DNA from: Octopus sinensis
Lineage: Eukaryota
Direction of reading: 5' to 3'
Assembly (NCBI RefSeq): GCF_006345805.1
Contig: NC_042998.1
Location: 37,262,001 to 37,326,000 of the forward strand
Length of the DNA: 64,000 bases
The first letter of the stretch is position 1; each line of letters starts with the position of its first letter. This document shows, piece after piece, positions 4,710 through 62,288 of the stretch. The notes beneath the pieces were generated by a model. The model was not told the DNA's origin, did no database searches, and saw only the letters and a program-made list of their open reading frames with translations. The position numbers and the translations under genes are program-made.

Positions 4710-7700
4710 TAGCTAAGAGAGTGCAAACCTCCGCCAATGCAACACCAATGTCCTCTGAACGATTAGCCAGAGAGGGTTTTTAGAATGAGAATATTTGAAA
4801 TAAACTCGACTGCTCTCACAAACGAGAATCCTAAAAAGGAACCCAACAACTCTCAAAAATTAAGTAAAATAAACGGGAAAATAATCCAGAATCCTTGCCT
4901 GGTAGTAGTCATGGAAAATAATCCTTGCCTGGTAGTAGTCATGGAAAATAATCCAGAATCCTTGCCAATAGTAGTCATGGAATATGAAGGTGGGTATACA
5001 AGCCGTGTTTGTAATGCTGTGAGTGGCTCGTCTGCAGTGGGAACATGGATGGTTTTCTCTATGAAGGTCTTTTTTAGTCTATCGACTGATATAGTGTCTT
5101 TATGGATATCTTTACTAAAACAAATAATAAAGGCAATTTTCGATCTATCAGCCTACGATATGATAAATATATCCATTCGAAGAATAAGGAAAAGGTGCCA
5201 AGTCAGAAATCCAACACTGAACAAACAGACCCGTCTCCTATTGTCACTGTCAATGCCTTAATGATAAGCCAAAACTCACGCCGGATCGGTCACCGCCCGG
5301 GTCAACAAGGGCCGCGTTACTCAGTTGGGAACCAAACTGAGTTCGGAAAGTCTGCTGCTGGAACAAACTCTATAAACAATGTACTAGGTAACAAGATCCA
5401 GAATAACTCTAACGTTAGGCATGTGCTAACACCACCAAAAACACCTAAAGCAAAACGCATGAAATGGACTAGAGAGTTGAAAGCTTTTAATATAGCCCAA
5501 ATAATTTCAAACAATAACCTCATAGTACAAACAAATTTTATGGAGAAATTTACTAGACAATGTAGTAGACAGATATATAGATGCAAATAAACTAAGTGAT
5601 GTATGTTGAGACATCATTAAGAATAAAAATTTGACTGACACTGAAATTAGCCAAATTAGGATACAAATATCTCATGGTAGACCAAATGAAAACAGCCAAA
5701 ATACAGATGAAAGAGGTAACATGTAGAGAACCTAGTATACGAGCATTACATCCCAAGGAGGAAGCTGGAAAAGAATAGCGAAAAACATATAAGCGGGAAA
5801 AGAGGACAAACGAAACCTACCTCAAAAACATCAGAATAAGTGTGACACGGAATTTGGAGTGAATAATGAAGACAAGATCATAGAAGCAAAAGAAGATATT
5901 ATCAGAGAACTCAGCAAGTATGAGTTTACTGATATAATTAATAACGAACAACTGGCAAAGTTCTGAAACAGCTTAAAAAAACCCCAACATAATCATGATA
6001 TATGATATTGGTCTTAAACAGATCTTAAGTAATAAGGGAAATGACCTAACAACCTAACAACCTTAAATAATCTCATCTATTTCACTGTTAAAGTCGTAAC
6101 TGCACAAATAGATATCAGGACGACACATAAAAGCAACAACCTTGTCAATAGACCTCCTAAGTGGAAAGTTACAATACAAAAATATATTGAATCTCTGCGG
6201 GCGAATATGTCATTACTCGATGAACTTGCTAGAGGAGTAGATGTTAAGATGAAACGAGATGGAAAAAGAACAAGCAAAAATATAAAATGAAAGACTCTAT
6301 ATACCTCCCTGTAACTAAGGAACAATTGAAATAACGAATACAATTGAAAGCCCAACGCAGGTCTAACATAAGAATAAAATTTTATCGACAAAACAAGATA
6401 TTCAGGACGGATGCAAAAGAATTTTACAGGAAAATTGGCAAACGCAAGATAGAAGTAAAGGAACCACCTAAGAGTCAAAGAATGGAAGAGTTCTGCAAGA
6501 AGATATGGAGCAACAAAAAAAATTATAATGTTGAAGCTGACGTGAGAAAGTGAGACTTGATGAAGCTGAGGAGCGGAAATTGCAGGCAATAGGGATAGAA
6601 GAGCTGCGATTTGTTCTTAGGAAGTCTCCAGGACTGAACCGAATTCCTAACTTCTGGCTAAATTGTCTGACAGAAGTACACCAACATTTAGCTGCCTCTC
6701 GGACGGATGTCATCCAGAATCCAAAGCAAATACTGGCCTGGATAACTACGAAAAACTGAAGAAACAAACAATCGAAATAACTACAAGATTCTCACATCCA
6801 TGTTAACTGACAGAATATACGCTTTCTTTGAACAGATATCTATTCTTCCACAAGCTCAGAAAGGGTGTAAAATGAATTCTTATGGGTGCAAAGATCAATT
6901 ACTCATAAGTAAAGTGACTGTAGTCGGCTTGCCGGAGCAAAAATAAAAAAAAACTTGAGTATGGCATGCATAGACCGGAGGAAAGCATTTCATAGTGTCC
7001 CACGTAATTGGATACTCAAGGCCTTTCATCTATATAAGATCTTTCTCTTTCCCCCTCCTGACATCTCCAAATTTTTAAAAGGTAGCATGACCAAGTAGAA
7101 CACACGTCACCTTCTAAACCACTGTAATGGGATGAGCCAAATTAACATCAAACGAGGCATCTTTCAAGGTGACCCCCTCTCCTCATTACTCTTTTATATG
7201 ACACTGATCCCACTCTCAAACGAACTGTGTAACACCAAGTATGGATTCAAAGTTTACAATACGACCATAAACCATCTCTTTTATATGGACGACCTGAAGC
7301 TGCTTGCTAGAAATGACAGGGTGCTAGTAGGGCTGCTAACAACTGTTAAAGAGTTCAGCAATGACATCGGGATGGACTTTGACCCTGATAAATGTGCTAA
7401 AGCAACATTTGTAAGAGGCATGCTCAGGAAAACAACTTCCATTAAATTAGATACCGACGCTACCATCAAAAATATTGGCTTACAAGAAAATTACAAATAC
7501 CTGGGGATAAACGAAGCGGGTGGTTTACAACCTGCTACTATGAAGGAAAAATAGGAATAAAGTATTACAGGAGAATAAGACTCATACTCAAAACTGAACT
7601 CAACTCTAAAACTCGCATCGAAGCTTGGCACTTCCAGTTGTTCGATATAGTTTTAACATTATTAAATGGAATTTTACAGAACTCCAACGCCTGGACAGGA

Positions 7701-7762
7701 AGACAAGAAAAATATAAGAACATGCACCATCCAAAAGTAGATGCTGATCGCCTGGGCAGAGG
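4710..7762 (+). mobile_element. R4/Dong-clade non-LTR retrotransposon, 5' region and RT, 3'-truncated, frameshifted
   Basis: Seen: N-terminal KRMKWTRE (ORF 5102-5590), QNKIFRTDAKEFYRKI (6344-6553), RT motifs RGIFQGDPLSSLLF, NHLFYMDDLKL, FSNDIGMDFDPDKCAK, YKYLGINE (7132-7554), and MHHPKVDADRL near 7720. Confidence 0.9.
4878..4984 (+). repeat. 30-bp tandem repeat (about 3 units) in the 5' region of the R4/Dong element
   Basis: Seen: ATCCTTGCCTGGTAGTAGTCATGGAAAATA at 4891 and 4921, plus a variant third unit. No unique spacers. Confidence 0.9.
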
Positions 7763-8059
7763 TAAAGATCATGGACCCACCCCTTTGGAACTTTTTTGTT
7801 TTTTTCTTTTACAGGAACACATTATATCGAGGGCGGAGAATCCGAATCTGCAAAAAAAAAATGCATTTCAAAATTTTAGTTCTCCCCCATCCATTTCTTA
7901 AATTTTCACTTGGTTATTCATTTGCCCACCAAAAATTTCTCATCCCAGGCATTTTTCTGTGTAGTTTAAAAAATGTTCACTGTATTACTTGGAGGCCTTA
8001 AAATAACATAAACGCCATATAAACACGAACATGTCAATGTGGGGAGGATCACCAATCTA

Positions 8060-8250
8060 GATGTGCTATGAAATGCCGGGCAAAATTGCTTAGCGATATT
8101 TCGCCCGTCCCTGCGTTCTGGGTTCAAATATCGCCGACGTTTACCTTGCCTTTCATCCGTTCAAGGTCGATAAAATAAGTGCCGGTTGAGTACTGGGTCT
8201 TTGTAATCTATTTAACCACTCTTACATTGTGTCAAAATTTGAAATCAACA
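8060..8250 (+). mobile_element. SINE family B, degenerate
   Basis: Seen: GCCGGGCAAAATTGCTTAGCG...GGGTTCAAAT...TTGCCTTTCATCCGTTCAAGGTCGATAAAATAAGT. Confidence 0.8.
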
Positions 8251-9248
8251 TTAATGACTTAGGTAAGATATGCTCGTCCAGCCTTCCAATTTCCCTCTTC
8301 AATAAATAAATGCCTTACATATTATCAAGATACTTAAAGCATATACAAAGCATAGGTGGGTTATTCAAATTAGTCTTATGTATTTTATATAAGTAAAATA
8401 GACAAACTTTTTGTCGCTAGATAAACCATAACAAAATATACCGAATGAGACACAAAGAAAAGATGTATCCGAAAGAAAACCGAAACAAAATATCTAAGAC
8501 TATAGAGTTTTAAAATGTTTATTTTTTTCACTAATATATATTCATTTTACAGAATTCCCTTTCCAAGTGAATAAATCAAACAGAATTTTCTTTTGTCGTT
8601 TTCTTGTATCAACGAAAGAATTGTTAAGTCGCCAAAGTTATCATAAGAGAAATATGTCACCATCGACTGAAATTTTAGATTTTATTTCTTTCTTGAGATG
8701 ATTAAACTAAGCATGAATCTTCCTTTATATTTTTGAAATACATAAACATGTATTTTAAATGTTTCATAAAAGTGATGGCAATGTGGGATTCACCAAACAC
8801 TAGAACTTATACATTTTCACGTATGCTGTACGCATCTTTGACAACCTCAAAAAAAACAGTAAACAAATAACACAATTAAATTATTTCTTAAAAGACGAAT
8901 GTTATGTCACACAAAAGAATTGAAATTATGACTAGTGCGCTACGTGACAAACATGTACAAATATTGTCTCAGAACACAGAGCTTGCTGGAAAATACAAAT
9001 ACGCAATAGAAAGGCTGGAAAATAATCACGTTTGTTGATTTCGTTCTGCAAAAGTCTGATGTAAGTAAATATCATGGATCTATAAGTGAAACAATGACAT
9101 GCGCCCTCCACTATGCACACGTGTGGTTATACGCCCGCGCACACATATATGTTATATGCTATACATATATATATATATATATATAGTATGTGATTGTGCG
9201 TGTGGGTATGTTTAGAATGAATGCGTGCGTGTCTTGTTGAATTCTGTA

Positions 9249-9286
<38 letters not shown>

Positions 9287-10942
9287 AATGTGATTGTGCG
9301 CATGGGTATGTTTAGAATGAATGCGTGCGTGTCTTGTTGAATTTTATTTCCTTGATATTAAATTTCTGCTTGTAGTTTGTCATCTTCCTATATAAAGTAA
9401 TCTTAAGATGGTTAATTATACTAAATGCATTATTGCCATCTTTCAGAAGAGTCAGCTAATGTGATACCCATTAAGGGTGCTTTTATATGCTGTTTTTGAA
9501 ACTATGGTTGGCATTACATACAATGAAAGGAACTTGAACTGGTGTAAACTCAACGAAGAAATAAATAGAAACGGTAATTCAAGCTGCACATCAATAGAAT
9601 TAATAAAAATAAAATACTGCACGATATAAGAATATTTCTTCATGTGCAAAATAATATCCTAAACTAAAGTTGTTTGTTATAATTATTTTCTAACTGAATA
9701 TTATAGAGTTACAAAAACATTTTAAAATTCCAGCAATATTTCTTTAAACATAATTAACTTAATGACCAGGGAAAAGAAATAATGAACATTACCATAAAAT
9801 TAAAGGAATAAATTCCTAACGTCATTAGAGCAACTCCTTGCGAAAACAGTTTCGGTAAGATTATATTGAACATAAATTTAAAGAGGCGTTTGACTTCCAC
9901 AATTAGGTTATTTTTTACGCAATAAATAGTATAGAGTTGCAAAATAAGAAAAAAAAAGCCCAACTAATTTTAAATAGCAACAAGAAAATAATTATCGTAT
10001 TGTAGAGGAGGTTTGGTAAAGAAGAAATGTAGAATAGTAAATATTATTTTAAGAATATAGCACTGCAGCCAATTAAAATACAAAAACATTTGTTATGCAA
10101 ATTAATGGAAATTTTCACACCAGTTTTAAGGTAATGACAAGAAAACCTCATTAAATGTGAATATTACCACGCCAGATTTGAATAAAAAAAAACAAAACAA
10201 GAGCCATAATGAAACTACAGGTTCCTTGCGCATCGATAGGACAATCTTCCAAGGTATAATCTATGAAGGACATATTGTGTAACAAAAACCTATAATAGTA
10301 TAATATATAATGAGTGTATAATGGTAACTCGTACTGATTTATATTTTAAAATCGTCTTGAATAATTGCGAATGCATACCAAAACATTGAATGCAGTTCTA
10401 CAATTTGTAACGCTACACGTTCGGTCAAACCTTTATTATACAAGAGACATTAGGAAAGAATCATGGTTCTGAGCGTCCTGCAATGGAACTATTTGGAGAC
10501 AGAGTTAAACAAAATGAGAGAAAACTTGTTGTTTCGTAAATAGATAAACTTCTATTAATATTACACATTTGATTGCCAATTTGCGTAATTTTTCTAATAT
10601 GTTATGGGCAAATTCTCCATAGAATGCTTTATTCGTTAAATAATTCCCACTCACGCAGTAAATTGGAACATAACTATAGAAAAGTGCACCAACGATTTTG
10701 TTTGCTCGTAATATTCTGCAAAATGGATATTTATTGATGAAAGTTTCTATAAATAATTTTCAGATGATGGCGATTCTAAATATGTTGGAATTTATGGGGG
10801 GAAACCTGGTAGCAGAGACGTTTCAGGCAATGCACACACCTCAAATTTATTTCCTCATTGCTACGGTCTAATGATTGAAACAAGTGAACGATAAAAATAA
10901 TTTCAAGAAGGTGTAAATCATGATTCTTTCATCTTTAATCAA

Positions 10943-11399
10943 TTACTTGTTTCAGTCATTAGACTGCGGTCCTGCTGGAGTACTGTATTGAATAACTTTT
11001 AGTTGAACGAATCGACTCCTTACAAATATTTTTTTCTTTCAAATATTGGTACTTATTATATCCGACTATCTTGCCAAACCGCTAGATTACGGGGATTTAA
11101 CACACGAACACCGGTTATCAAGCGTTGGAGGCAACACGAACACATAAAAAAATCTCTTTCTCTCTGCCTCACACACACAGAATCACACCCGGGGACACAC
11201 ACACTCCCATACACACACGCACACACACATATAAGTATACAAGCTACTTTCAGTTTCCTTGAACAATATCCAATTGCAAGGCTTTGATTGGCTCGATGAC
11301 CTAGTAGAAGGCACTTGCCCAAATTGCCGCATAGTGGCGCTGATTCTGGAAGGACGTGGTTGTGAAGCACACTCGTTTCCAGAGAGCCACATCTGTGCC
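10943..11399 (-). mobile_element. SINE family A, older full-length copy
   Basis: Seen: tail TTACTTGTTTCAGTCATT...CTGGAG, internal (CA)n, GACACTTGCCCAA-like core and a degenerate head. Confidence 0.85.
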
Positions 11400-14023
11400 T
11401 ATTATATGAAGATTTCATATGAAAAATATGGAGGAAGATGTCATGCAGTTTGACTTGGTTTCCTTAACGCTTTCGGGTTTTAATTACAAATATTTTGTTT
11501 TACATATTGAGACTCATGTGATCACTGATTTTTATTTGTCTAATGTCATTCAAACACTCCGATACCCTCCACCCCAGAATGCAAACGGACTAAATAGTTC
11601 AACTAATGCCTTTTCAGATGATGTAAAATTTGCCACCATTATATACTACGAAGGTATTTGAACTATTTTTTGGTTTTTATGTGTGTATGTTACTTCTCAT
11701 TTTCATAAAATGTGCTCAGCAGGCCATGCTATGTAAGTGCACATCCCAGCGCTTTAGCCCTTTTTCTTTTTTCCCATTGAATTCCGTTATAATAGTAATC
11801 TACAACAATCCGAAAGTAATTTTTTGAAAATCCCATTAAAATATACTCGATTTCTAATACATAGGAGAAGGGAAAAGAGGGAGGGCAAACGTCTGTAGTT
11901 TTGCTGAATTGATGGAAATTAAACCACTCTTCTTTTACTGATTTCTATTTCTTCTACACGACTCAAAAATTATGAAAATATATTGCAATCAATATAATTT
12001 AGATACTAGAGCATACTTATAATTTGGATTAATTAGCGTGACAAATATTTGGGTTACCTTCATATTTCCAGAATTATAACAGACGGTAGAAGACGCTACC
12101 ACGCAGTAAAGTGAAATATGGCATTGAATGAGATTTGTGATTGAAGATCTTATTTGAAATATTCAATGAAAATATATATATACCAAAACTGAAATGTATA
12201 AAAAATCTCAAGCCAGTTTAGCCTCTAATAATTGGTGTCTCTTAGTAAACGTTACATAATTCGAACCAATTAATAAGCAACTTTCTCCGTTATATTCAAT
12301 TACTGATAGAAATGTATTCATCTGAATTCTCATCGCTGCCAATATTGTCAATTAGTCTCAGGTAGATATACTGTCTAATTCCTCTTTTAACAAGAATACA
12401 AAAAGTGCTTCGAATATGACTGTTCTTCCTTATGTTAGATCAGATATATTTACTTGATCAAAGTATGTAACAAAAATCGTTTGAATAATGCTCATACACA
12501 AATGAAATAATAATAACAAGAGCACTCAGAGAGCGTGTGTGTCTGTGTGCGTGTGTATGAGCCTGAGCGGATTGGTGCTCTTTATAGTGTGAATGATGAT
12601 TACTATCACTATCACGGTTTGACAGATTATTCTGACCGATGTTCATCCGGGTTGGTCTGTTTTACGACTGCTGTGTGTACATTCATGAGCAGGTGGACCA
12701 AACATAAAAGTGAGAATTGACTTCAAATTTGCGACATATTATACATATCTATTCAGTCTATCCAAAGTACTGACTTTCATATTCAGTATTGTTTTCACTA
12801 AATGAAATATAGTTTAATTTACTTTCGATTATTAAAATCGATATTCAAATAAACCAGGTTTATGATTTGTACATCTTAGTAATACGTAAACACTTGAACA
12901 ACAAAGTTGACGTGAATGCAGATAGAATTAATAAAGCATATCTTCGAAATTAAACCATAAATATATATAGTTAAGAGATTTAGTATTCCAACCCAAGTTT
13001 TTCCACGGAAATTTTAGGCAGCCGTACATTTGAAGAATTACATTTTTCTGCAATATTTTTTTATCTTGATCAACTGTGTGAGTGGCAGTCCTTTATCGAT
13101 CCTTGATGATGACAAGCAAACTCAATGTCGGTAGAATTTCAATTCAAACCGTACTGGTCGAACGTAGCGCCACCTATTACATTCAATCGGCCTACACACT
13201 CATAGCATGTAAATCATTCACTTTCTGGCGGTTTATGAACTATATGTCAAAATAGAAGACTAAAAGGACAATTATAAAAATGACGGGAAAAATTGTTCCA
13301 TCGTGAAAAAAAAAAGTATCGGTAATGATTTTCTTTTTCACATGGTAAATCTATCCAAGAGAAATAAACAATATCTACAAAGACTTACATAAATATATAA
13401 ATGCCTCTTGTTTAACAGCCAAACAGCCTCAGAATGTGTATTATGTGCAAGCAGGTGGTACGTTTAAAATTGCAGGATGTGGACAAGAGTATGTTTATTT
13501 GCCACAAAACAGAACCAGATATAAATCAATTCACACTGACATGTTTGTTGCATTATTGAGGAAAAGACCAAATTTCAAATATCCGTCAATTTTTTCATAA
13601 CAATGCTAGGAATGTTTGAGTTCTTGTTCATTTTCATTTTAACGATATTCATAAATGCACACACTGCTTGCATATAGGCATGTATGTTATATTTTTACCT
13701 TAATACAGCTGATCATCACAATCATCATACATGCATGTATGTGTGTGTTTATGTGTGTATCACTGTGTGTAGTTTATATGCATGTATGTTTTTATATCTT
13801 TGCCATAATACAACTGTTCGTCGTAATCATCAAACTACATACGTGCATGTGTGTGTCATGCATATATTTATGTGTGTATTTTATAGGCAAATATTTTATT
13901 TATAGTCTTACCTTAATACAACTGACAAACATATTCATCAACATATATACATACATGCATGTGTCTCAGTGTGTGTGTCTGTGTGTGTGTCTGTGTGCGT
14001 GTAAGTGTGTGTGTGTCTGTGTG

Positions 14024-14743: not shown

Positions 14744-16699
14744 ACTTGGAAGATGTCCTCAGAGCGGCTGGTTTCGGACCCGTCTTCCGCGGCTGGATAG
14801 CCGCTTTGTAGAAAGGCATCCGTTCGGTAATTCGCGTAAATGGACATCTATCGAGACCTTTCGACATCGTCGCTTCTCTATGTATTGACTCTCGAGCCAT
14901 TATTGCGGAAGCTGGCAACTCTGAGGGGCATACCGCGAGAACTGGGATGCGGGACGAGTTTGTCTGCATACGCGGACGACGTCACCGTCATAGTGTCTAG
15001 CCACGAGCACATCGAGCAGGTCGGCGAGACACTGAAAAACTACGAAGCGGTGACAGGAGCGAAAATCAACGGGGAAAAAATCAGTGGGCTTGCGACTCGG
15101 CACCTGGAGAAGTTACCCCATGCCGTCCACCAGCGCCTCCGTTGTCGGACGCTGAACCGACGGTCCGGTCGAGTTGCTCAGTGTCTGGCCTGGTCCGGAC
15201 CTCCGGACCTCCGGAGAAGAACTGGAATGAGATAACGAGTAGGGTGGTGACTCTCGCCGGGCAATGGGCCGAGAGGAAACTGTCCCTAAAAGGTCGGGCG
15301 GAGGTGGCGAACGCGTACATCGCGTCCGTCATCTACTACCGCCTGACCGTCGTGCCTTGTCCCGACCCTACCATCACCAAACTAGAACGCATTCTCTTTC
15401 GCTTCTTGTGGAAAGGATGCGTCCCAATGGTCAGGCGATCCATTTGCTGTCAACACCCGTTAAAAGGAGGACTGGGCATACCGTGGTTGATGATGTGCAG
15501 ACACGCACTAAGACTGCGACATCTCCGGCTCTATGTAGACGACGGTGAACAGGTGTGGTCGCCGTTTGTGAGGCACGTTCTCCCGCAACTCGTCTCCATG
15601 ACTGAACCGCAGTCGTGGATCAAAAAGAGGCCGAGGAAGGGCGAATGGCACCGCGAGTGTCGCGTTGCTCTCAAGCAACTCTGCCGTCCTGGGTCGACCT
15701 TGAGTGACTCCAACACAACCAAAGCATTCTATAGGGGATTAGTGGAGGGGAGGTACGACGACGAGCTCGGGACGAACCTGGACGTCGACGACGAATACCT
15801 GACCCGCCTGTTCAGGACAACTTCCAGAGATCCCTGGCCTGGCAGTGCTACCGAGAAGCGCTACCCGTTCGGGATAAGCTTTACAGACACGGCTCGCGAA
15901 ACACAGGGCCGATGCCCGAGATGCGGTCAGAGCGACAAAACCGTTCTGCACGCACTCGTGCAGTGTCCAACAATCTCCGACCTGTGGGCATATGTCGAAC
16001 GACTGCTGTCACGGGTGGGACGAGTCGGTTTATCAGCCGAGTCTATGGTCAATATTGTTACACCCCCTTCCTTCAAACGGGAAGGAAGAGCTATTTTCAT
16101 CATACTTGTGGCTATGGCGTAACAACGTATCTGGTGGACGCGTCTGAAAGGATTGGAGACAAACACTTTCCTCTCTGGTCAATCTCTCATCAACTTCTTT
16201 AAGTATCACTTGAAAAGGAAAGTGAGAGTAGAGAAGCATGTTTTGTCTAGCGAATGTTTTTAAAAAAGATGGGTGAATGCAGCAAGGATGGCACGTATGA
16301 ATGACGAAGCCACCTTGAGCATAATCCTATGAACCCGGAAATTTAAAACAGAGGGTTACCCACTTGGAAACAAATGTGGTAACATGTAACAATATTGACT
16401 GAGGTTACCGTGGTCCTTTCCGTAGGCTTTTCTTCCCACGGATAAACCTTATCTGTTTCCCCTTTTACGCCTTACATCATGACACTGTGATACACGATCC
16501 CTATTCATCGTTTTTCCCCTTTTTTCCTTTTTTCTTTTCTTTTGTTTCTTTTCCTTTTTTCTTTTTTTTTCTTCTTCCCCTTTTACGATCCCTTTTGATC
16601 GAATACCTACCCCACTTCTTTTTTTTTCCCAAAAAAAGAAAAGCGCTACTTTGTAATCTGTCCCGTATGTGTGCAGCTCTGTGTGGCTAATAAAGAAAC

Positions 16700-54250: not shown

Positions 54251-55849
54251 TGACTAATGCCAACTCCCTTTGATACTGCGTTTCCTTCTACTTAAAAAAA
54301 TTACTTTTGTTATCGATAAATATTTGGGGATGCTATTGCTTATGCCTTGCATTATTTTGAAAGTGATTTGGTGAGACTCTGCAATCATATAATGATTTCG
54401 GTGCATTTTCTCCCTATTTTGAATACTCGTCAATATACAGATCTTTGTTAAACGTAGACAAATAATTTCAAGAAAGCAAGCAATCAAATTTCATATATGT
54501 CCAATTCAAATAGACGCCGTCTTTCCTATCATACTTTACGTTAACATAATTCATTTGCTCTTAATCAAATCGAATCTAAAGTTTTCTCAAGTTTTGTAAG
54601 AGTTGAGAAAGACGCAAGTCCGTGAATGACACCTGTTTTTACAAAGACATTAGGGCGAATATCAGTTACATTATAAATAGGTGAGTGGCACTTTCCCTAT
54701 GAGTTTCAGGAAAGGGCAGCCCTTCCTCATTAACGGGAATGGATTCAAAACTTCGCTAGTAAGAACATAGATTGTATGCAGACCCCGAATTAGATGTTAA
54801 GTTTGAAATTTCACAAAATTCTAAATCATTAATGGACACATTAAACATTCTACAATAATGGAATATAACCAGAATATTAATCTCTATACATACTGCGTAA
54901 TAATTTATTAAATATTCAACTTCTATCTGGAATAAACGCATATATTTTATTCTCTGGCCTTCAAATGAATAACTAATCAAGTCTCTTAAAGTAAATTTCA
55001 GCATATAACAAGGTTTCAATAATATCCTGGGTATTTACAAACAAATAAAAAATAACTCTTTTCGATGCGTGTAAAAACAAGCTTCACCATTAGTTGCCCT
55101 AATAATAATTTCTATTCCCAGTGTGTTAACATATCTTTGGATGGGTTGATCATTTGAACGATTTTAAGAGACAACTAATGCTGTTTGCAACACCTGTTCA
55201 TATGTTTTTATTCTTTATTTATTTGATTTTCAGGAAGGCTGTTTTAACAATAAGGCCAATTGAATATTAAAAAAAAAACAAACAGCTGTGCTATTGCCAG
55301 TTTAAATATCAAAACACTAAGTATACTTTAAAATAGTGGAACAGCCAATCCTATGACAATTACTTCTTAAACGATTCATCAAATTTTATTTAGCTTTGTA
55401 TTAAAATGTGTTTTCCATTAAAGCGTTTTATTGATTTATGTTATAGAGAGGATCGGGGCTTCGTGCACAGCTTGTATCCGAGTTAAAAGACTTGGCATCT
55501 CTAAATATAATAATTTCATCGCTTTATGAATGCAAACAGCGAAAGAAGGGTTACATTTCTGAAATGCAGAGGCATATAATTAATCAGTTGCTATTCCCCG
55601 ACATACACATATCTAAATACATGTGCATTAATGGGTATAATTATTGATTTAAATGATGCTTCAAGAGAAAGAGGAGAAAAAATTATATCAACACAATTCT
55701 TTTTGGTACATTATTCTATTGATTGAGGCTTAGAAGGGACAACAGAATATGAGCGCGTGACGTTTATGCCTTTCCGTCTGTAGAATATTGGTTTCGACTA
55801 TTCTAGAGAATGTCGCTAAGCATTTAGCCCGGGGGAGGTGGCTAACGAT

Positions 55850-56060
55850 TCTCCTTTCTGTTATAGGCAAAAGGGCTGAAATTTGATGAGAGGGGCCAGT
55901 CGATTAGATCGACCCCAGTACGCAACTGGTACTTAATCCATCGGCCCCGAAAGGGTGAAAGGCAAAGTCGACCTCGGCGGAATTTGAACACGGAACGTAG
56001 CAGCAGACGAAATACCTCTAAGCATTTCGAGGTGCTAACGATTCTGCCAACTCGCCGCTC
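55850..56060 (-). mobile_element. SINE family B
   Basis: Seen: GTGAAAGGCAAAGTCGACCTCGGCGGAATTTGAAC...GCTAACGATTCTGCCAACTCGCCGC. Confidence 0.88.
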
Positions 56061-56276
56061 TCCTTCTCTAAGATATCAAGAAGTGAATTATCAAAACATA
56101 AATCCAATACGAATCTCGCATCCATGTCTACTTCTGTGTGAAGGCGTTTATGACATTAACGGTTAACAAACAATGGGTAAAGAAAAAAGAATTGCTTCAA
56201 TTAAAATCGATTCCAAAGATGAAACAGGAGAAAAACAGTTCTGCTAATATTGAAACTAATTAACGGTATCCGGAGA

Positions 56277-56873
56277 TCAATTCCTTGCAGACTGAATCGG
56301 TCGCAATATTACAAGAATACTGTAGATTACACTGGTCAGAATGAGGAATTTCTCTCTTATTTCTTCTGGCATCGAATTAATCCGGCATAAGTGACGCTTA
56401 TTGAGGTATTCCAGTTCTTGATAGAAAACCTTATCTTCGTAACTGTTACATTTCTCCGTCAGTTCCTCAATCTGAGACACGTAGGCAGAGAGATTATCCA
56501 AAGATTGTTTGCAATAATCAGCCACTTGTTGTAACTTAGAATACGATTCTTCCGAAGTTAAACAGCCAGTATCTTTGAACGTCCGCAATTCCCGAGAAAT
56601 AAACGTCACCCAGGTTCTAATTAATGAGTTGTGGGCTTCAAGGTTCTGAAGAATTGATTTTAACTGTACATATTTTGTTATAATCTCATTGGAGACAAAA
56701 TCAATAGGGTGAGAGAGGCCCGAGTCGATTGTGCCGATGTTGTAACAAGCAATGTCTTCTAATTCCTCTATTTCACGGGGGAAACTCTGACAAATTAGGA
56801 TCTCGGCGTCTTTGATGGCTCTCCGACTGATATTGGTAATTAAAGAACATTTTAGGGAAACCCGCGTGTTCAT
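56277..56873 (-). CDS. PSME3: Divergent single-exon proteasome activator PA28/REG family protein (PSME3-like), 198 aa; probable retrogene
   Basis: Seen: uninterrupted ATG-to-TGA ORF. By-eye colinear match to human PA28gamma as recalled: RRAIKDAEILICQSFPREIEELE vs ERITSEAEDLVANFFPKKLLELD; VSNEII..YVQLK vs SNQQLVDIIEKVK; IRTWVTFI vs VKMWVQLL; G...EE...KLQQV......LDNLSAY vs GVSIQEETVAELRTVESEAASYLDQISRY; EIREKFLILTSVI...ILRP vs ELRNQYVTLHDMI...IKRP. The symbol denotes the family, not proven orthology. Confidence 0.75.
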   Translation of the reverse strand: MNTRVSLKCSLITNISRRAIKDAEILICQSFPREIEELEDIACYNIGTIDSGLSHPIDFVSNEIITKYVQLKSILQNLEAHNSLIRTWVTFISRELRTFKDTGCLTSEESYSKLQQVADYCKQSLDNLSAYVSQIEELTEKCNSYEDKVFYQELEYLNKRHLCRINSMPEEIREKFLILTSVIYSILVILRPIQSARN

Positions 56874-57084
56874 GATTCCTTGCTAAAGTATGATGACGCC
56901 GATTCCAAAAGATTCTCTCAAGCTAGAACCGACCAACCGCTGTTGCTTCTACAAAAATTTATAATGGATTCATCATTAAAATAATGAAACATTCCAAGCA
57001 ATAATTAGAATATTTCTAAAGACTGAAACGTTATCGAATTTTCTAATATTCAAATGTTATTCTTTTAACACAAATTTCTTTAAT

Positions 57085-57240
57085 TTTGGTTTCAAATTTT
57101 GGCAGAAGGTCAGCAATTTGGTGGGAGGGGATAAGTCGACTACATAGACCCCGGTGGTCGACTGGTACTTATCTCTTTGACCCCGAAAGGATGAAAGGCA
57201 AAGTTAACCTCGGCGGAATTTGAACTCAGAACGTGCAGAC
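57085..57240 (-). mobile_element. SINE family B, 5'-truncated
   Basis: Seen: GACCCCGAAAGGATGAAAGGCAAAGTTAACCTCGGCGGAATTTGAACTCAGAACG. Confidence 0.85.
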
Positions 57241-57257
57241 GGGCCAAAAGTTAAAGA

Positions 57258-57299
<42 letters not shown>

Positions 57300-57321
57300 G
57301 TATATATGTATATATATATAA

Positions 57322-57425
57322 GCGTAGGCGTGGCTGTATGATCAGAAGCTTGCTTCCCAACCACATGACACTGGGTTCAGTCCCTCTACATACCACCTTG
57401 GGAAAGTGTCTCCTACTGTAGCCTC
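57322..57425 (+). mobile_element. SINE family A, head only
   Basis: Seen: GCGTAGGCGTGGCTGTATG...GGGTTCAGTCCCTCTACATACCACCTTGGGAAAGTGTCT. Confidence 0.8.
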
Positions 57426-58315
57426 TAAATGTGTTTTATGTGTGGTGTGTCTGTGTGTGTTGGTGTCTGTGCACGTGCGTCCGCACGCGCGTTTGTGCGT
57501 GTGTGTGCGCGCCCACGCTTTTATGTCTATGTTTATATATTGCATGTCGATCTGAAAGCTTCACCAAAAAGTGATAGCGAACTAATCTCGTATTTATAGA
57601 TCGATATCGTTTTGTTTTCGTTTGTGTACAATGATTTGATATATGATGAGGAAGATAAGGTTAGCAAATAAAACACACACACACTCACACAGACAAACAA
57701 ACAAACAAGAATATTAATATGTGGGTAGATGCTGGACTTCTGTTTCAAGAGATATATTCCCAAATGTTATTTGTGAACAATGATTCACTTTTTTTTTCTA
57801 AACGCGGTTTAGTGTGGGGATCAAGTTTATGTTAAAAATAGTTCAAGAGATCCCCATTATGTAGTTTGAAAGCTGCATGAAACAAATTTCAAGGCTATGT
57901 GAGGCGCTTCTTTCGCAACGGAACTTCGATGTTACATCCAATTTATATTATTTATAGATATACAGTGGGTTAAAAAAAAATACTGCGCTTGACTATTGAG
58001 TCGACCATAAATTCATGACTAATATAATATCTAAATTTTGTATGTCTTATCACAATTGTTAAAATATTTAGTTACATCAGTCAAATGTATTTCAGATAAA
58101 CAGAGATTATTCAGTTTGTTTCGCTATAGCTGAATCATTCCCATCTTCTAATTTCAAAAATGCACATCATTAATTATCGACAACTATTCCTTTAAATATA
58201 GAAAATCATGTTTTAGATTCATCGATATTCTTATCTGTAATCCTTTCGACATATTCAAAAAGCATTCATTATGCAGAGAAGTGTTCGTAGTGAAGCATAT
58301 ATTCACTTTTACACT

Positions 58316-58531
58316 TTTACTTGTTTCAGTCATTTGAATGTGGCTATGCTGGAGCACCGCCTTTAGTCGAGCAAATCGACCCCAGGACTTATTTTTTGTA
58401 AGTCTAGTACTTATTATATCGTTCTCTCTTACCGAACCGTTAATTTACGGAGACGTAAACACACCGGCAACGGTTGTCAATCGATGTTGGGGGGACGAAC
58501 ACAGACACAGACACACACACACACACACACT

Positions 58532-58566
<35 letters not shown>

Positions 58567-58720
58567 GCATATACATATATACGACGGGATTCTTTCAGTT
58601 TCCGTCTACCAAATCTACTCACAAGGCTTTAGTCGGCCCGAGACTATAGTAGAAGATACTTGCCCAAGGTGCCACGCAGTGGGACTGAGCTCGGAACCAT
58701 GTGGTTGATATGCAAGCTAC
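58316..58720 (-). mobile_element. SINE family A lacking the first ~25 nt of its head
   Basis: Seen: an otherwise complete copy. On +, GCAAGCTAC (58712-58720) is followed by ATTATTTC instead of the TTACCACACAGCCACTCCTGCGCC seen in intact copies. Confidence 0.9.
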
Positions 58721-58974
58721 ATTATTTCATAAATATTTGTCATGAAGGCATTACAAAGAGCGGACGAACAAGAACACAGACATTAAAGGGTGAAGTAGCT
58801 GTAGCGATTAAATATTTACAATTTAAAATATACAATGATTTAATAAATATGCTTATAACTTTTGACTTAATCGTTGCTCATTACAAATGAAATTTGTAAT
58901 GGCTTCTCTGAAGGATAGGCATCCGACCACCAGGGTAGACCCCTTGCTTTTTCTTTCCTGTTTTTGGCTTCCAC

Positions 58975-61900
58975 TTACCTGGTGCCAAACACTCCCAGCT
59001 TCCTCGCCACAGGCTTCCATCTTCTCATGAATCTGTCTCGTGACAGGTATCTTTTCTCCAGCCTGATCTTATTACTGAGGTGGTAACTAAAAAAGTTAAC
59101 CAACCCCTGGCCGGATACAAAGGTACCCGACACTATGTCTCTCACACGCGTCTTCCATATTGTTTCTTTCAGTATGGCTACTATGCAGAAAATGCAAGCC
59201 TTCCTTTCCCTGTTAAGGGCACGAGGCGGCACAATCTCGATGATAGACTCAGCCGATAGCTGTACTCTTCCCATTGATGACAACAGTTGCTCTGCGAAAA
59301 CTATCAGTCTCGTTAATTCCGGACATTCCCCAAATGCGTGCAAGACGGTTTCCCTCTCCCGCCCGCACCTCGGACATGTCGGCACTTCCGTGCCTTGACA
59401 GTTTATCACGAACAGGTAACGCCGCACGGAAGCACTGTCAAGCCAGAGATTTCTGGTAATTGTCCAGATACCCTGGCCCGAAAGTTCTCCGGATTGATTA
59501 ACTGATCTTCATCGTAGCCCAGTGTCTCCCCCAAGGCGTCTTCGGACTTAACCTCCATTAACCCGCTATAGAAATCCGCGGTGCAACTCTTGTTGCCGGC
59601 ATTGCCCGCCTAAGAGAGTAGCTGAAGTGCCTGGCGGCACTCCAATTGCCATTCCCCAGCCTAGGTCTCTGCTTGATCCAATTGCCAATGTCCGTTAAGG
59701 ACGTTAATTGCGGAAGGTAGAACCGAACGTGCGGTGACCACACCTGCACCCATCCAGGTGAAGCCAGAGGTGCCTCAACCTTAACGCAAATTTTCGCATC
59801 CTCAGCCAAGGCATCCCTAGCCCACCCTTTAGCGGTTGCTGGCAGCAGACAGAGCGTTTCACGAGTGGCTTTCTTCCCTTCCACAAAAAGTGGAAAATGA
59901 TTCTCTCCAACTTGTTCAGCCACAAATCGGGGCAAAGCACCACGGTCAGACGGTAGGTGATAACTGATGCTATAATCATCTGCATCACCTCCGCCTTTCC
60001 TAACAAGGATAAGGCCCTCCCAGACCAGGTCTGGGTTAGAGCAGTCACGTTGCTGGCCACCTCACACCGATTTTTCTCTATCTAAACGTCTGGCCCGAAC
60101 CAGACTTCGAGCAGCTAAACAGGACCTTTCTTCCAACGCCCCACGAAGTTATTGGACGGCATCGGCTTGCCCCTCCAGGTGCCGAGCTGCAAACCAATTC
60201 GCTTGTCCTTGTTAACTTTTGCTCCTGCCACCGCCTCGTAACTTTTGATAAACTTTTCCACCACTAGAACCTGGCTCTCCTCCGCCACGATGATGGAGAT
60301 GTCATCCGCATACGCCGTAGCTCCTCTTCCACACAATAGATCATGCGGTACGCACCCTAGTGCCTCCAACTTCCATAATAATGACTTGAAAGCCAGTACA
60401 TACAAAAGCGGGGACAGGGAACACCCCTGACACACTTTCGAAAGGAAACCATTCACTTTTACGACGGACTCGATATCGCAGTACAGCGCAGCAATCCAAC
60501 CGGGCCCAGGCCATCCTTCTCGAGGACCGCCGCCAAGTACCGATGGTCGACCCTATCGAAAGCCTTAGACTGGTCTAAATATACCAGTGTCCACCCTCTG
60601 CGCCAGAAAGCTTCCCCACCCTCTCTAAGGAGTAGCGTATAAGGTGGAGATTGTCGTGGATCGTCCTGCCCGGGATAGCGCACGTTTGCTCTTCCCCGAC
60701 AAGTTAGTCCATGACCCGCGCCAACCTTGGCCAAAATCTTTAACTCTGTGTTCAGCTGAGTTATGGGTCTGAAGTGCCCTATCTCGTCCCCCTTGCTCGG
60801 GTCCTTCACCACCCCACGGCTCGCAGACTTGAGAATTCTCCCATTCTGCTGCCAATTGGCGTATACGCTGGCCAGCAGGTGTACGAACAAGTCTGGTATA
60901 GCTTTGTAAAATTCATAAGACAGAGCATCGAGATCCGGCGACTTCTCCCCGTAGCATTCGACCAGTACCTCGATTACCTCCTCTACCGTGATTGGCCCTT
61001 CACAGCACTCAGGCTCTCGTGCCGAGAGACGCGGGCCGCCAGACAGGAAGTCCCTAAGGGCCTCGCCATGATCCAGCGCCCCACCACTCCCAAACAACTC
61101 GACAAAGTGCTTGTGAATCGCCTCACACATCTCGTCCCGTCCATCGACCGAACTCCCATTGTCATCCACGAGAGACCTAATTGTGGCATCATTTCCACGC
61201 TGGGTTTCTACTGTACATCCGGCAACATTAATTCCCTCACAGCCTAATGCGCGCGCTTTAGCCCGAACTCTGCACCCCTCATGTATGGCTTTGAGGTGAC
61301 GGTCCAAGGCCGTTCTCGCTGCCAAAATGTGATATGCAGAGCCCAATCTCAACGCTTCCTGTAGGTCCTTAACTAGTTGCCCTTCTATTCTGGCCTTATC
61401 TAGTCTTAGCTGACGGCTAAACCTAATAGACTCAAAACGAATGGCTCTCTTCAGGGCGAACTACCATCAGTTATTAACCACCGTTCCGGTTAACACCCTC
61501 TGTACTAATTCCTCAATCAGGCTACGGTATGCCTCGCAAGTCAAAATAGACTTGTTCAGCTTCCAGTAGCCGTATCCTCTCTTAACTGTACTATGTCCAG
61601 TCTACACTTAACCATTCTATGGTCAGTGTATGTTTTTTGGACAAGCTGTGGACAGCTAAAACTAGACTTATCTTCAGTTCTCATCACTATCCTATCTAAA
61701 TAGGACTTGAACCTTTGGTCGCCACTCATACAGGTCCACTCTGGGACGTTCGGATGGTGAAGTCTGTAACGATCTGCCTGCTGAAACCGCTTGAACAGAT
61801 CAACGAGACGTGAGTTTACTTTCCTATAGATCGAGCCAACGCTATCGATGCGCGCATCAACAATAGCGTTATAGTCACCTAACACCACTAATGTCTTCGA

Positions 61901-62288
61901 CGTCACAAGAAAGTTCTCTAGGCGCCGATAAAAAATCAGTTTGAAATCCTCTAGTACAAGATACATAGATCCCGACCAACCTGAAGGCCTTCCTGCTGTA
62001 TGTCACATTAAGGATGACCAGCCCACCTTCTGGGTCTACATAGACTATACTTGTCTGCAGAGCCAAGCCTTTTCGAAACAGTACTACTACACCCCCCCCC
62101 CGGCTAGTAGACATGGTTTTCTCATTGTCATTCAGGAGGGGCGAGAAGGCTTGTAGACTGTCAAGCTTGGTCTATGTAGCAACCATCACATGCATATCGT
62201 GTGATCTGAGGTCGTCGAGGAAACAAGCTTGCTTCCACTTCGAGCTCAGACCACGCACATTCAAACACCCAAGGTTAAGTGCAGTCAT
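58975..62288 (-). pseudogene. Tx1 ORF2 (AP endonuclease + reverse transcriptase + C-terminal Cys/His knuckle), multiple frameshifts and stops
   Basis: Seen: MTALNLGCLNVRGL, LGDYNA, SYLDR, TDH (APE); PDLDALSYEFY, RPITQLNTELKILAK, LDQSKAFDRVDH, QGCSLSPLLY, AYADDISII (RT); CPRCG...TVLHAFGECP. Confidence 0.93.

Follow-up and report, generated by a model that had tools for sequence, protein, structure and literature searches.

The intact reading frame on the minus strand of the window (the whole 64,000-nucleotide stretch of DNA analysed here) appears to be a young processed duplicate of the octopus gene LOC118761736, from which it would have inherited its unusual features, and it seems to have evolved in a near-neutral manner ever since, while the parent gene stayed under constraint. 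A probability of roughly 0.6 is given to this reading. The product of the frame is a genuine relative of the PA28 proteasome activator. As judged from the sequences compared in this study, it belongs to an octopod-wide, fast-evolving PA28-like clade, in which the four-helix bundle is kept and the homologue-specific insert is lost.

PA28gamma is the single conserved PA28 of most animals. The PA28 monomer is an elongated bundle of four long helices, and its C-terminal tail (about 10 residues) docks in pockets of the 20S alpha ring. Database annotation of the clade proteins goes no further than uncharacterised or hypothetical, and a search of the literature on octopus PA28 and on the cephalopod clade found no relevant publication. 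PA28 regulators have a nearly invariant activation loop as a defining trait, and invertebrates are generally credited with one PA28 (PMC4453063, PMC7915322). The activation loop shows strong conservation across the three PA28 subunits of vertebrates and is needed for the stimulation of 20S, and the C-terminal tail contributes binding energy to 20S (PMC7915322).

The coding sequence is open throughout its 198 codons, ends with a TGA stop (56277-56279), and is free of introns, as had been stated in a preliminary description of this DNA. The PA28-like frame measures 201 codons from stop to stop, so that the ATG is essentially the earliest possible start. Features of the window copy and its surroundings are listed in Table 1.

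Table 1. Positions of the PA28-like gene copy, its duplicated flanks and neighbouring repeats (window coordinates, except for residue numbers and where stated).
Feature	Position	Strand	Remarks
Intact CDS, PA28-fold product	56277..56873	-	Pfam, AlphaFold2, Foldseek, family profile
Window-protein landmarks	helices 2-43, 57-95, 108-144, 148-197; activation-loop position 96-107; tail 189-198		residue numbering
Parent-intron site, codons 107/108	56552..56553	-	uninterrupted in window: TTAACTTCG/GAAGAATCG
Co-duplicated 5' flank, 375 bp	56874..57248	-	~95% identical to parent upstream genomic DNA
5'-truncated tRNA-derived SINE in 5' flank	~57095-57248	sense to gene	runs ~40-60 nt further upstream in parent
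Co-duplicated 3' flank, 637 bp	55640..56276	-	~91% identical to parent downstream DNA
SINE copy in 3' flank	~55866-56056	sense to gene	
Conserved CAG site	parent record 9980-10000; window 56874-56895		window copy mutated to TTTAGCAAG
(TA)30 microsatellite	57262..57320	.	13 nt off 5' breakpoint of block
Decayed LINE, context only	58975..62002	-	endonuclease, reverse-transcriptase and zf-RVT fragments in separate broken frames
LINE endonuclease fragment	61556-62002	-	
LINE reverse-transcriptase fragments	60115-60552, 60459-61460	-	
LINE zf-RVT fragment	58975-59508	-	

The Pfam domain PA28_C (PF02252) matches residues 62-184 of the window protein with 24.3 bits (E = 3e-5), above the gathering cut-off of 20.9 bits, and PA28_N (PF02251) matches residues 18-40, in colinear order, with 16.3 bits, below its cut-off of 21.2 bits. 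PA28_C is matched by five of six clade members, with a best E of 4.4e-16. A profile that combines the ORF with its relatives aligns with human PA28gamma at E = 2.3e-19 over PSME3 residues 7-247, that is, the whole length of the protein. The sole large gap in this alignment (~48 residues) lies at the homologue-specific insert, in agreement with the short linker joining helix 1 to helix 2 that had been noticed beforehand. The AlphaFold2 monomer model from the family alignment (pLDDT 81, pTM 0.79) has four long helices, and when it was compared with the PDB by Foldseek, all of the 50 best matches were PA28 subunits from human, mouse, and Plasmodium (TM-scores 0.5-0.72). The PA28 homology and the four colinear helices proposed in the preliminary description are thus borne out by profile, model, and fold search.

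A chance ORF in repeat-rich DNA might be suspected of a spurious resemblance to PA28, since the window protein alone matches the PDB sequences only marginally (PSME3 at E = 0.02) and PA28_N stays under its cut-off. However, the PA28_C score, the family profile along full PSME3, the restriction of the fold matches to PA28 subunits, and the conservation of homologues in further species refute this explanation, which is left with almost no probability. With PA28gamma (REGgamma, PSME3; PF02251 and PF02252) the octopod proteins share the colinear four-helix bundle and several positions in the helix cores, such as the W of helix 2 and the FP+..EL motif of helix 1. They differ from PSME3 in the low identity of ~15-20% and in the absence of the ~48-residue insert. 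In the protein search, a canonical octopus PA28gamma was not among the best 120 of 1467 matches to human PA28gamma; those of the 120 that carried a name were all vertebrate.

At the position of the activation loop, the PRIEDGNNFGV of PA28gamma is replaced by SRELRTFKDTGC in the window protein, and one of 12 positions is the same as in PSME3. The tail (...LRPIQSARN) is three residues shorter than that of PSME3 and is without the terminal Tyr, and the predicted last helix reaches residue 197. The non-canonical loop and tail had therefore been described correctly; however, they had been attributed to a radical rewiring by this copy, and the comparison with its relatives shows that the divergence predates it. 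The canonical loop is absent in all members of the clade, and their loops differ from one another: REFQTFKDAGS in the parent, REFKTVKDAGI in an outgroup octopod, HDANRPNDMAV in Argonauta, and SRKGSPLELRT in P0005, a member of a distant branch. The tail of the Argonauta protein ends ~9 residues earlier than that of PSME3, and the tail of the outgroup octopod is four residues longer as a result of a shifted stop. Exon 2 of the outgroup octopod (393-690 of its contig) encodes a protein that ends in ...RPIQSSRNRTSNTVN, seven residues beyond that of O. vulgaris.

Octopus and Argonauta are 25% identical in the loop and 0% in the tail; for the helices the value is 37-49%, and for the turn between helices 3 and 4 (FYQELEYLNKRH) it is 65%. 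In PSME3 of fish and bird, by comparison, the loop and the tail are both 100% identical. Within the octopod clade, conservation is lowest in the loop and the tail, neither of which is retained; the loop, unlike that of vertebrate PA28alpha, PA28beta, and PA28gamma, is shared neither with canonical PA28 nor among the clade members. Since these regions are non-canonical and variable across the whole clade, the unusual loop and tail of the window copy are inherited. This pattern suggests that the fold is retained in the octopod clade, perhaps together with oligomerisation and a function of the distal face, but not canonical gate opening.

The distant branch consists of proteins of 251-254 aa with 24% identity. 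Spliced contigs of this branch occur in seven Logan runs (SRR8281664-93, SRR7369732), and it is therefore transcribed. Its genomic representative is a two-exon gene at 6064-8653 of the ENA ERZ21867824 contig. In the helix 3-4 turn (YPDVHDY) and in the length of the tail, the distant branch is nearer to canonical PA28, while its activation loop is still non-canonical.

The exact window protein is on record as a called gene of Octopus vulgaris in assembly GCA_951406725.2 (record OX597815.1, near 177.4 Mb). Its nearest relative is LOC118761736 (CAI9740496.1 in O. vulgaris), a protein of the same length with 86% identity. LOC118761736 is found in the same assembly on another chromosome record, OX597838.1, and it is therefore a paralogue of the window copy rather than an orthologue. 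CAI9740496.1 differs by a single residue from XP_036355773.1, the product of LOC118761736 in O. sinensis. The coding sequence of LOC118761736 has two exons separated by a 2342-bp phase-0 GT..AG intron with a pyrimidine tract, which follows codon 107 (LTS/EES) and occupies 10322-12663 of the parent-locus record.

In the window copy this intron is missing exactly at its GT..AG borders. The same codon is followed by an intron in O. sinensis (2336 bp) and also in Argonauta hians, where the intron measures 1490 bp (6343-7832 of the locus record) and the protein is 44% identical. In Logan WGS contigs of the outgroup octopod, the exon-1 ORF continues into GTAAAC, and exon 2 is preceded by a CAG acceptor. 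The distant branch has the intron as well, both in P0005 and in the gene on the ENA contig (intron ~6526-8350). Its occurrence in all of these relatives indicates that the intron is ancestral, and the intron-less window copy is thus the derived, processed form. Parent and copy are alike in their length of 198 aa, in the type of loop, and in the tail; they differ in the intron, in chromosome, and in the constraint that the parent retained after the duplication.

The preliminary description had implied canonical multi-exon PA28gamma as the source. Such a direct retrocopy would have lost the loop, the insert, and the original tail after its insertion here, and nothing beyond the missing introns of the window copy speaks for it. 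Against it, the same genome contains a two-exon and already divergent parent with matching loop, tail, and length, identical to the copy at 86% of the protein and ~92% of the flanks. This architecture recurs in O. sinensis, Argonauta, and other relatives. The two-exon parent and the clade-wide architecture refute a direct origin from PA28gamma, which can be regarded as exceedingly improbable.

A comparison of gene structures bears on the origin of the clade itself. Pufferfish PSME3 has nine coding introns, none of which is located at the intron site of the clade. The single intron of the parent (phase 0, just after the activation-loop position) corresponds to a site in the middle of canonical exon 7 (GVSIQ/EETV), which is uninterrupted in pufferfish PSME3. 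Conversely, none of the nine canonical PSME3 intron sites is interrupted in the octopod genes, the reference being a vertebrate (pufferfish) and not a mollusc. It is possible that the clade was itself founded by a retrocopy, with the intron gained afterwards, as far as a vertebrate rather than a molluscan reference can indicate.

DNA similarity between the two loci extends over 55640-57248 of the window (~1.6 kb) and thus covers the coding sequence and its surroundings from -375 to +637, with one SINE on each side. The 5' breakpoint of the duplicated block falls within the upstream SINE, and at the 3' end the homology stops at most ~20 nt past an AATAAT hexamer. Of the 597 coding sites, 41 differ between the window copy and the parent, as do 7.7% of the flank sites; these differences rule out contamination of the assembly by cDNA.

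Because the ancestral intron has been removed exactly, the window copy most likely arose via a spliced RNA intermediate. The source would have been the two-exon LOC118761736, a member of the octopod PA28-like clade with its unconserved loop and tail, the mRNA of which would have been spliced and then retroposed to another chromosome as an intron-less block of ~1.6 kb. The window copy resembles processed retrogenes and retropseudogenes in the exact GT..AG intron removal, the location on another chromosome, and the single exon. Unlike them, it has neither poly-A nor a target-site duplication, and its 5' end lies in a SINE of the parent locus. No A-run is present at the 3' end of the homology (~55620-55640), and the two junction regions share no word of at least 7 nt, although the (TA)n at the 5' junction could mask a target-site duplication. 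A LINE-type microsatellite tail in place of poly-A was also considered, and was rejected since the nearby (GT)n belongs to a different SINE-type repeat and not to a LINE 3' end.

Another possible route is a DNA duplication of ~3.9 kb that took in the promoter, the gene, and its flanks; the intron would then have been lost exactly, by recombination with cDNA. It would account for homology that runs through the SINE copies to 375 bp upstream and ~640 bp downstream of the coding sequence and ends at arbitrary points, as well as for the absence of poly-A and target-site duplication. However, two rare events are required by this route where one suffices, and a 1.6-kb mRNA with long SINE-containing UTRs is plausible. 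The proximity of the 3' end to AATAAT and the location of the copies on different chromosomes also argue against it. DNA duplication with subsequent intron loss is therefore considered unlikely, and retroposition of a spliced mRNA is preferred.

The surroundings of the ORF had been described as decayed repeats with broken transposon frames, and they indeed comprise SINEs on both sides, the (TA)30 microsatellite, and the split LINE (Table 1). Two SINE-type families occur around the gene. In the first, represented by the two copies in the flanks, the head is tRNA-like and includes a B-box-like GTTCAAATTCC; the second (58297-58724 and 57262-57425) contains a (TA)n(GT)n tract internally. Both families are multi-copy in the parent locus too. 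ARAGORN called no tRNA on the SINE heads. GC content rises to 0.47 across 60-64 kb of the window. The longest open frame of the window, at 15001-16122 (+) with 373 codons from stop to stop, matches only zf-RVT, and weakly (E = 0.002); it probably represents a further remnant of a LINE.

In non-coding DNA the copy and the parent have diverged by 7.7%, which is 2.85-fold the divergence of the O. vulgaris and O. sinensis parent loci from each other (2.7%). Therefore, the duplication predates the split of these two species, and O. sinensis should have the copy or its remains. In dS, the distance from copy to parent amounts to roughly a third of the distance to the outgroup octopod. The copying event would thus be placed after the split from the outgroup octopod and before that of O. 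vulgaris and O. sinensis. In a collection of 5.8 billion proteins, none from another source, O. sinensis included, reaches 90% identity with the window protein, although the O. sinensis orthologue of the parent is present there; as negative evidence this is weak.

A possible splice acceptor upstream of the ATG had been taken as a hint of an acquired 5' UTR exon. The motif is present (TACTTTAG, 9 nt 5' of the window ATG), but the exon is not borne out: the parent, O. sinensis, and the outgroup octopod read TTTGGCAGG or TACTTTGGCAGGGAATCATG at this site, and the AG of the motif is due to a G-to-A change private to the window copy, in which the adjoining conserved CAG is now AAG. The upstream 375 bp are colinear with parent genomic DNA and are therefore not an acquired exon. 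In the parent, O. sinensis, and the outgroup octopod, the common sequence is CATACTTTGGCAG/GGAATCATG, where a CAG, 8 nt in front of the ATG, comes after a short stretch rich in pyrimidines. This conserved CAG could be a genuine 5'-UTR acceptor of the parent.

The 41 coding differences between copy and parent were polarised with both exons of the outgroup octopod, and Argonauta and the O. sinensis parent served as further guides. The outgroup octopod is equidistant from the two copies (~80% exon-1 DNA identity), and one of the 41 differences is ambiguous. On the window lineage, 21 changes are non-synonymous and 6 are synonymous, with an omega of 0.94 that does not differ from 1 (p = 0.82), whereas the parent lineage has 7 and 6, respectively, with an omega of 0.31 (p = 0.039). 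In a relative-rate test the excess of non-synonymous changes (21 vs 7) is significant (p = 0.008), and synonymous changes are equal. Per lineage, the coding sequence of the window copy has changed at 0.0455 per site and the flanks at 0.0386, and the window copy therefore evolves at a neutral rate. For the 27 changes, an omega of 0.2 is rejected (p = 0.0002), and the long-term value of the family (~0.42) is excluded only marginally (p = 0.05). Against the outgroup octopod, the parent family has an omega of ~0.36-0.44, indicative of long-term purifying selection. The pairwise dN/dS of copy and parent (0.53-0.73) was dropped as a measure for this copy, being an average over two lineages whose rates differ greatly.

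These rates do not support the earlier proposal that the copy was kept by selection, and signals of constraint on its own lineage are weak. The loop (12 residues) takes 4 of the 20 window-lineage replacements (p = 0.03), and the replacements are not significantly milder than random in a BLOSUM test (p ~0.15). Clade-conserved sites, on the other hand, are struck by 3 of the 20 replacements where 7.2 are expected (p = 0.035), and none of the 20 falls in the tail or in the FYQELEYLNKRH turn, which is the best-conserved motif of the clade. The neutral chance of finding no stop in the ORF, given 27 substitutions, is ~0.31. The ORF is also free of indels, compared with 13 indel events in 972 bp of co-duplicated flanks; at the flank rate, the neutral chance is 0.02 for no indel and 0.06 for no frameshifting indel. 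The joint neutral chance of an intact frame becomes ~0.006-0.02, a result that is inflated since the ORF was chosen for being open. The intact frame and the sparing of clade-conserved sites may be a weak hint of residual constraint. Most likely, the window copy is redundant and under strongly relaxed constraint, perhaps to the point of complete neutrality, and has so far avoided a disabling mutation. Its substitutions since the duplication would have accrued at a neutral pace (omega close to 1), while constraint on the parent persisted.

The same observations could be read as those of a functional young retrogene kept by selection as a cap that does not activate, a subunit of hetero-oligomers, or a dominant-negative partner of the parent or of canonical PA28, with its fast protein change reflecting neofunctionalisation. 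The indel-free frame, the avoidance of clade-conserved sites, the untouched turn and tail, the called gene in the O. vulgaris assembly, and the long-term purifying selection on the parent family are in favour of such a retrogene. However, its own-lineage omega is near 1, its protein has changed three times as much as the parent's at equal synonymous change, the replacements are no more conservative than random, the protein collection holds no close counterpart from O. sinensis or elsewhere, and the intactness statistic is biased by the choice of the ORF. Retention by selection is accordingly a less probable explanation than a redundant processed duplicate, although it keeps an appreciable minority share of the probability.

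A more specific proposal is that the window copy is expressed and functional, perhaps in the testis only, and that its product is a non-activating or inhibitory 11S-type cap subunit that joins the rings of the parent or of canonical PA28gamma with neither activation loop nor docking tail of its own, the cephalopod PA28-fold clade as a whole having a non-gate-opening role. Such a role would centre on the conserved helix 3-4 turn. This proposal is speculative and rather improbable. Under the preferred reading of a young processed duplicate, the window protein, if translated, would behave like its parent: it would be expected to form helical-bundle oligomers and not to open the 20S gate via the canonical loop.

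A single PA28 has been described for invertebrates, along with independent fast-diverging paralogues in jawed vertebrates (alpha, beta) and in tunicates (b, c, d) (PMC4453063). The octopod genes are similar to vertebrate PSME1/2 and tunicate PSMEb/c/d, in that what may be an extra PA28-derived gene diverged fast in one lineage and was conserved afterwards (omega ~0.4 in octopods), and the octopod clade would fit as a further case in this pattern of independent PA28 paralogue divergence. The window copy dates a recent duplication and shows the drift of a protein under relaxed constraint, and it would be of interest chiefly if it is expressed and conserved. If the clade is real as read here, it would be the third independent PA28 paralogue divergence after those of vertebrates and tunicates, and it would provide a natural test of the PA28 fold without gate opening.
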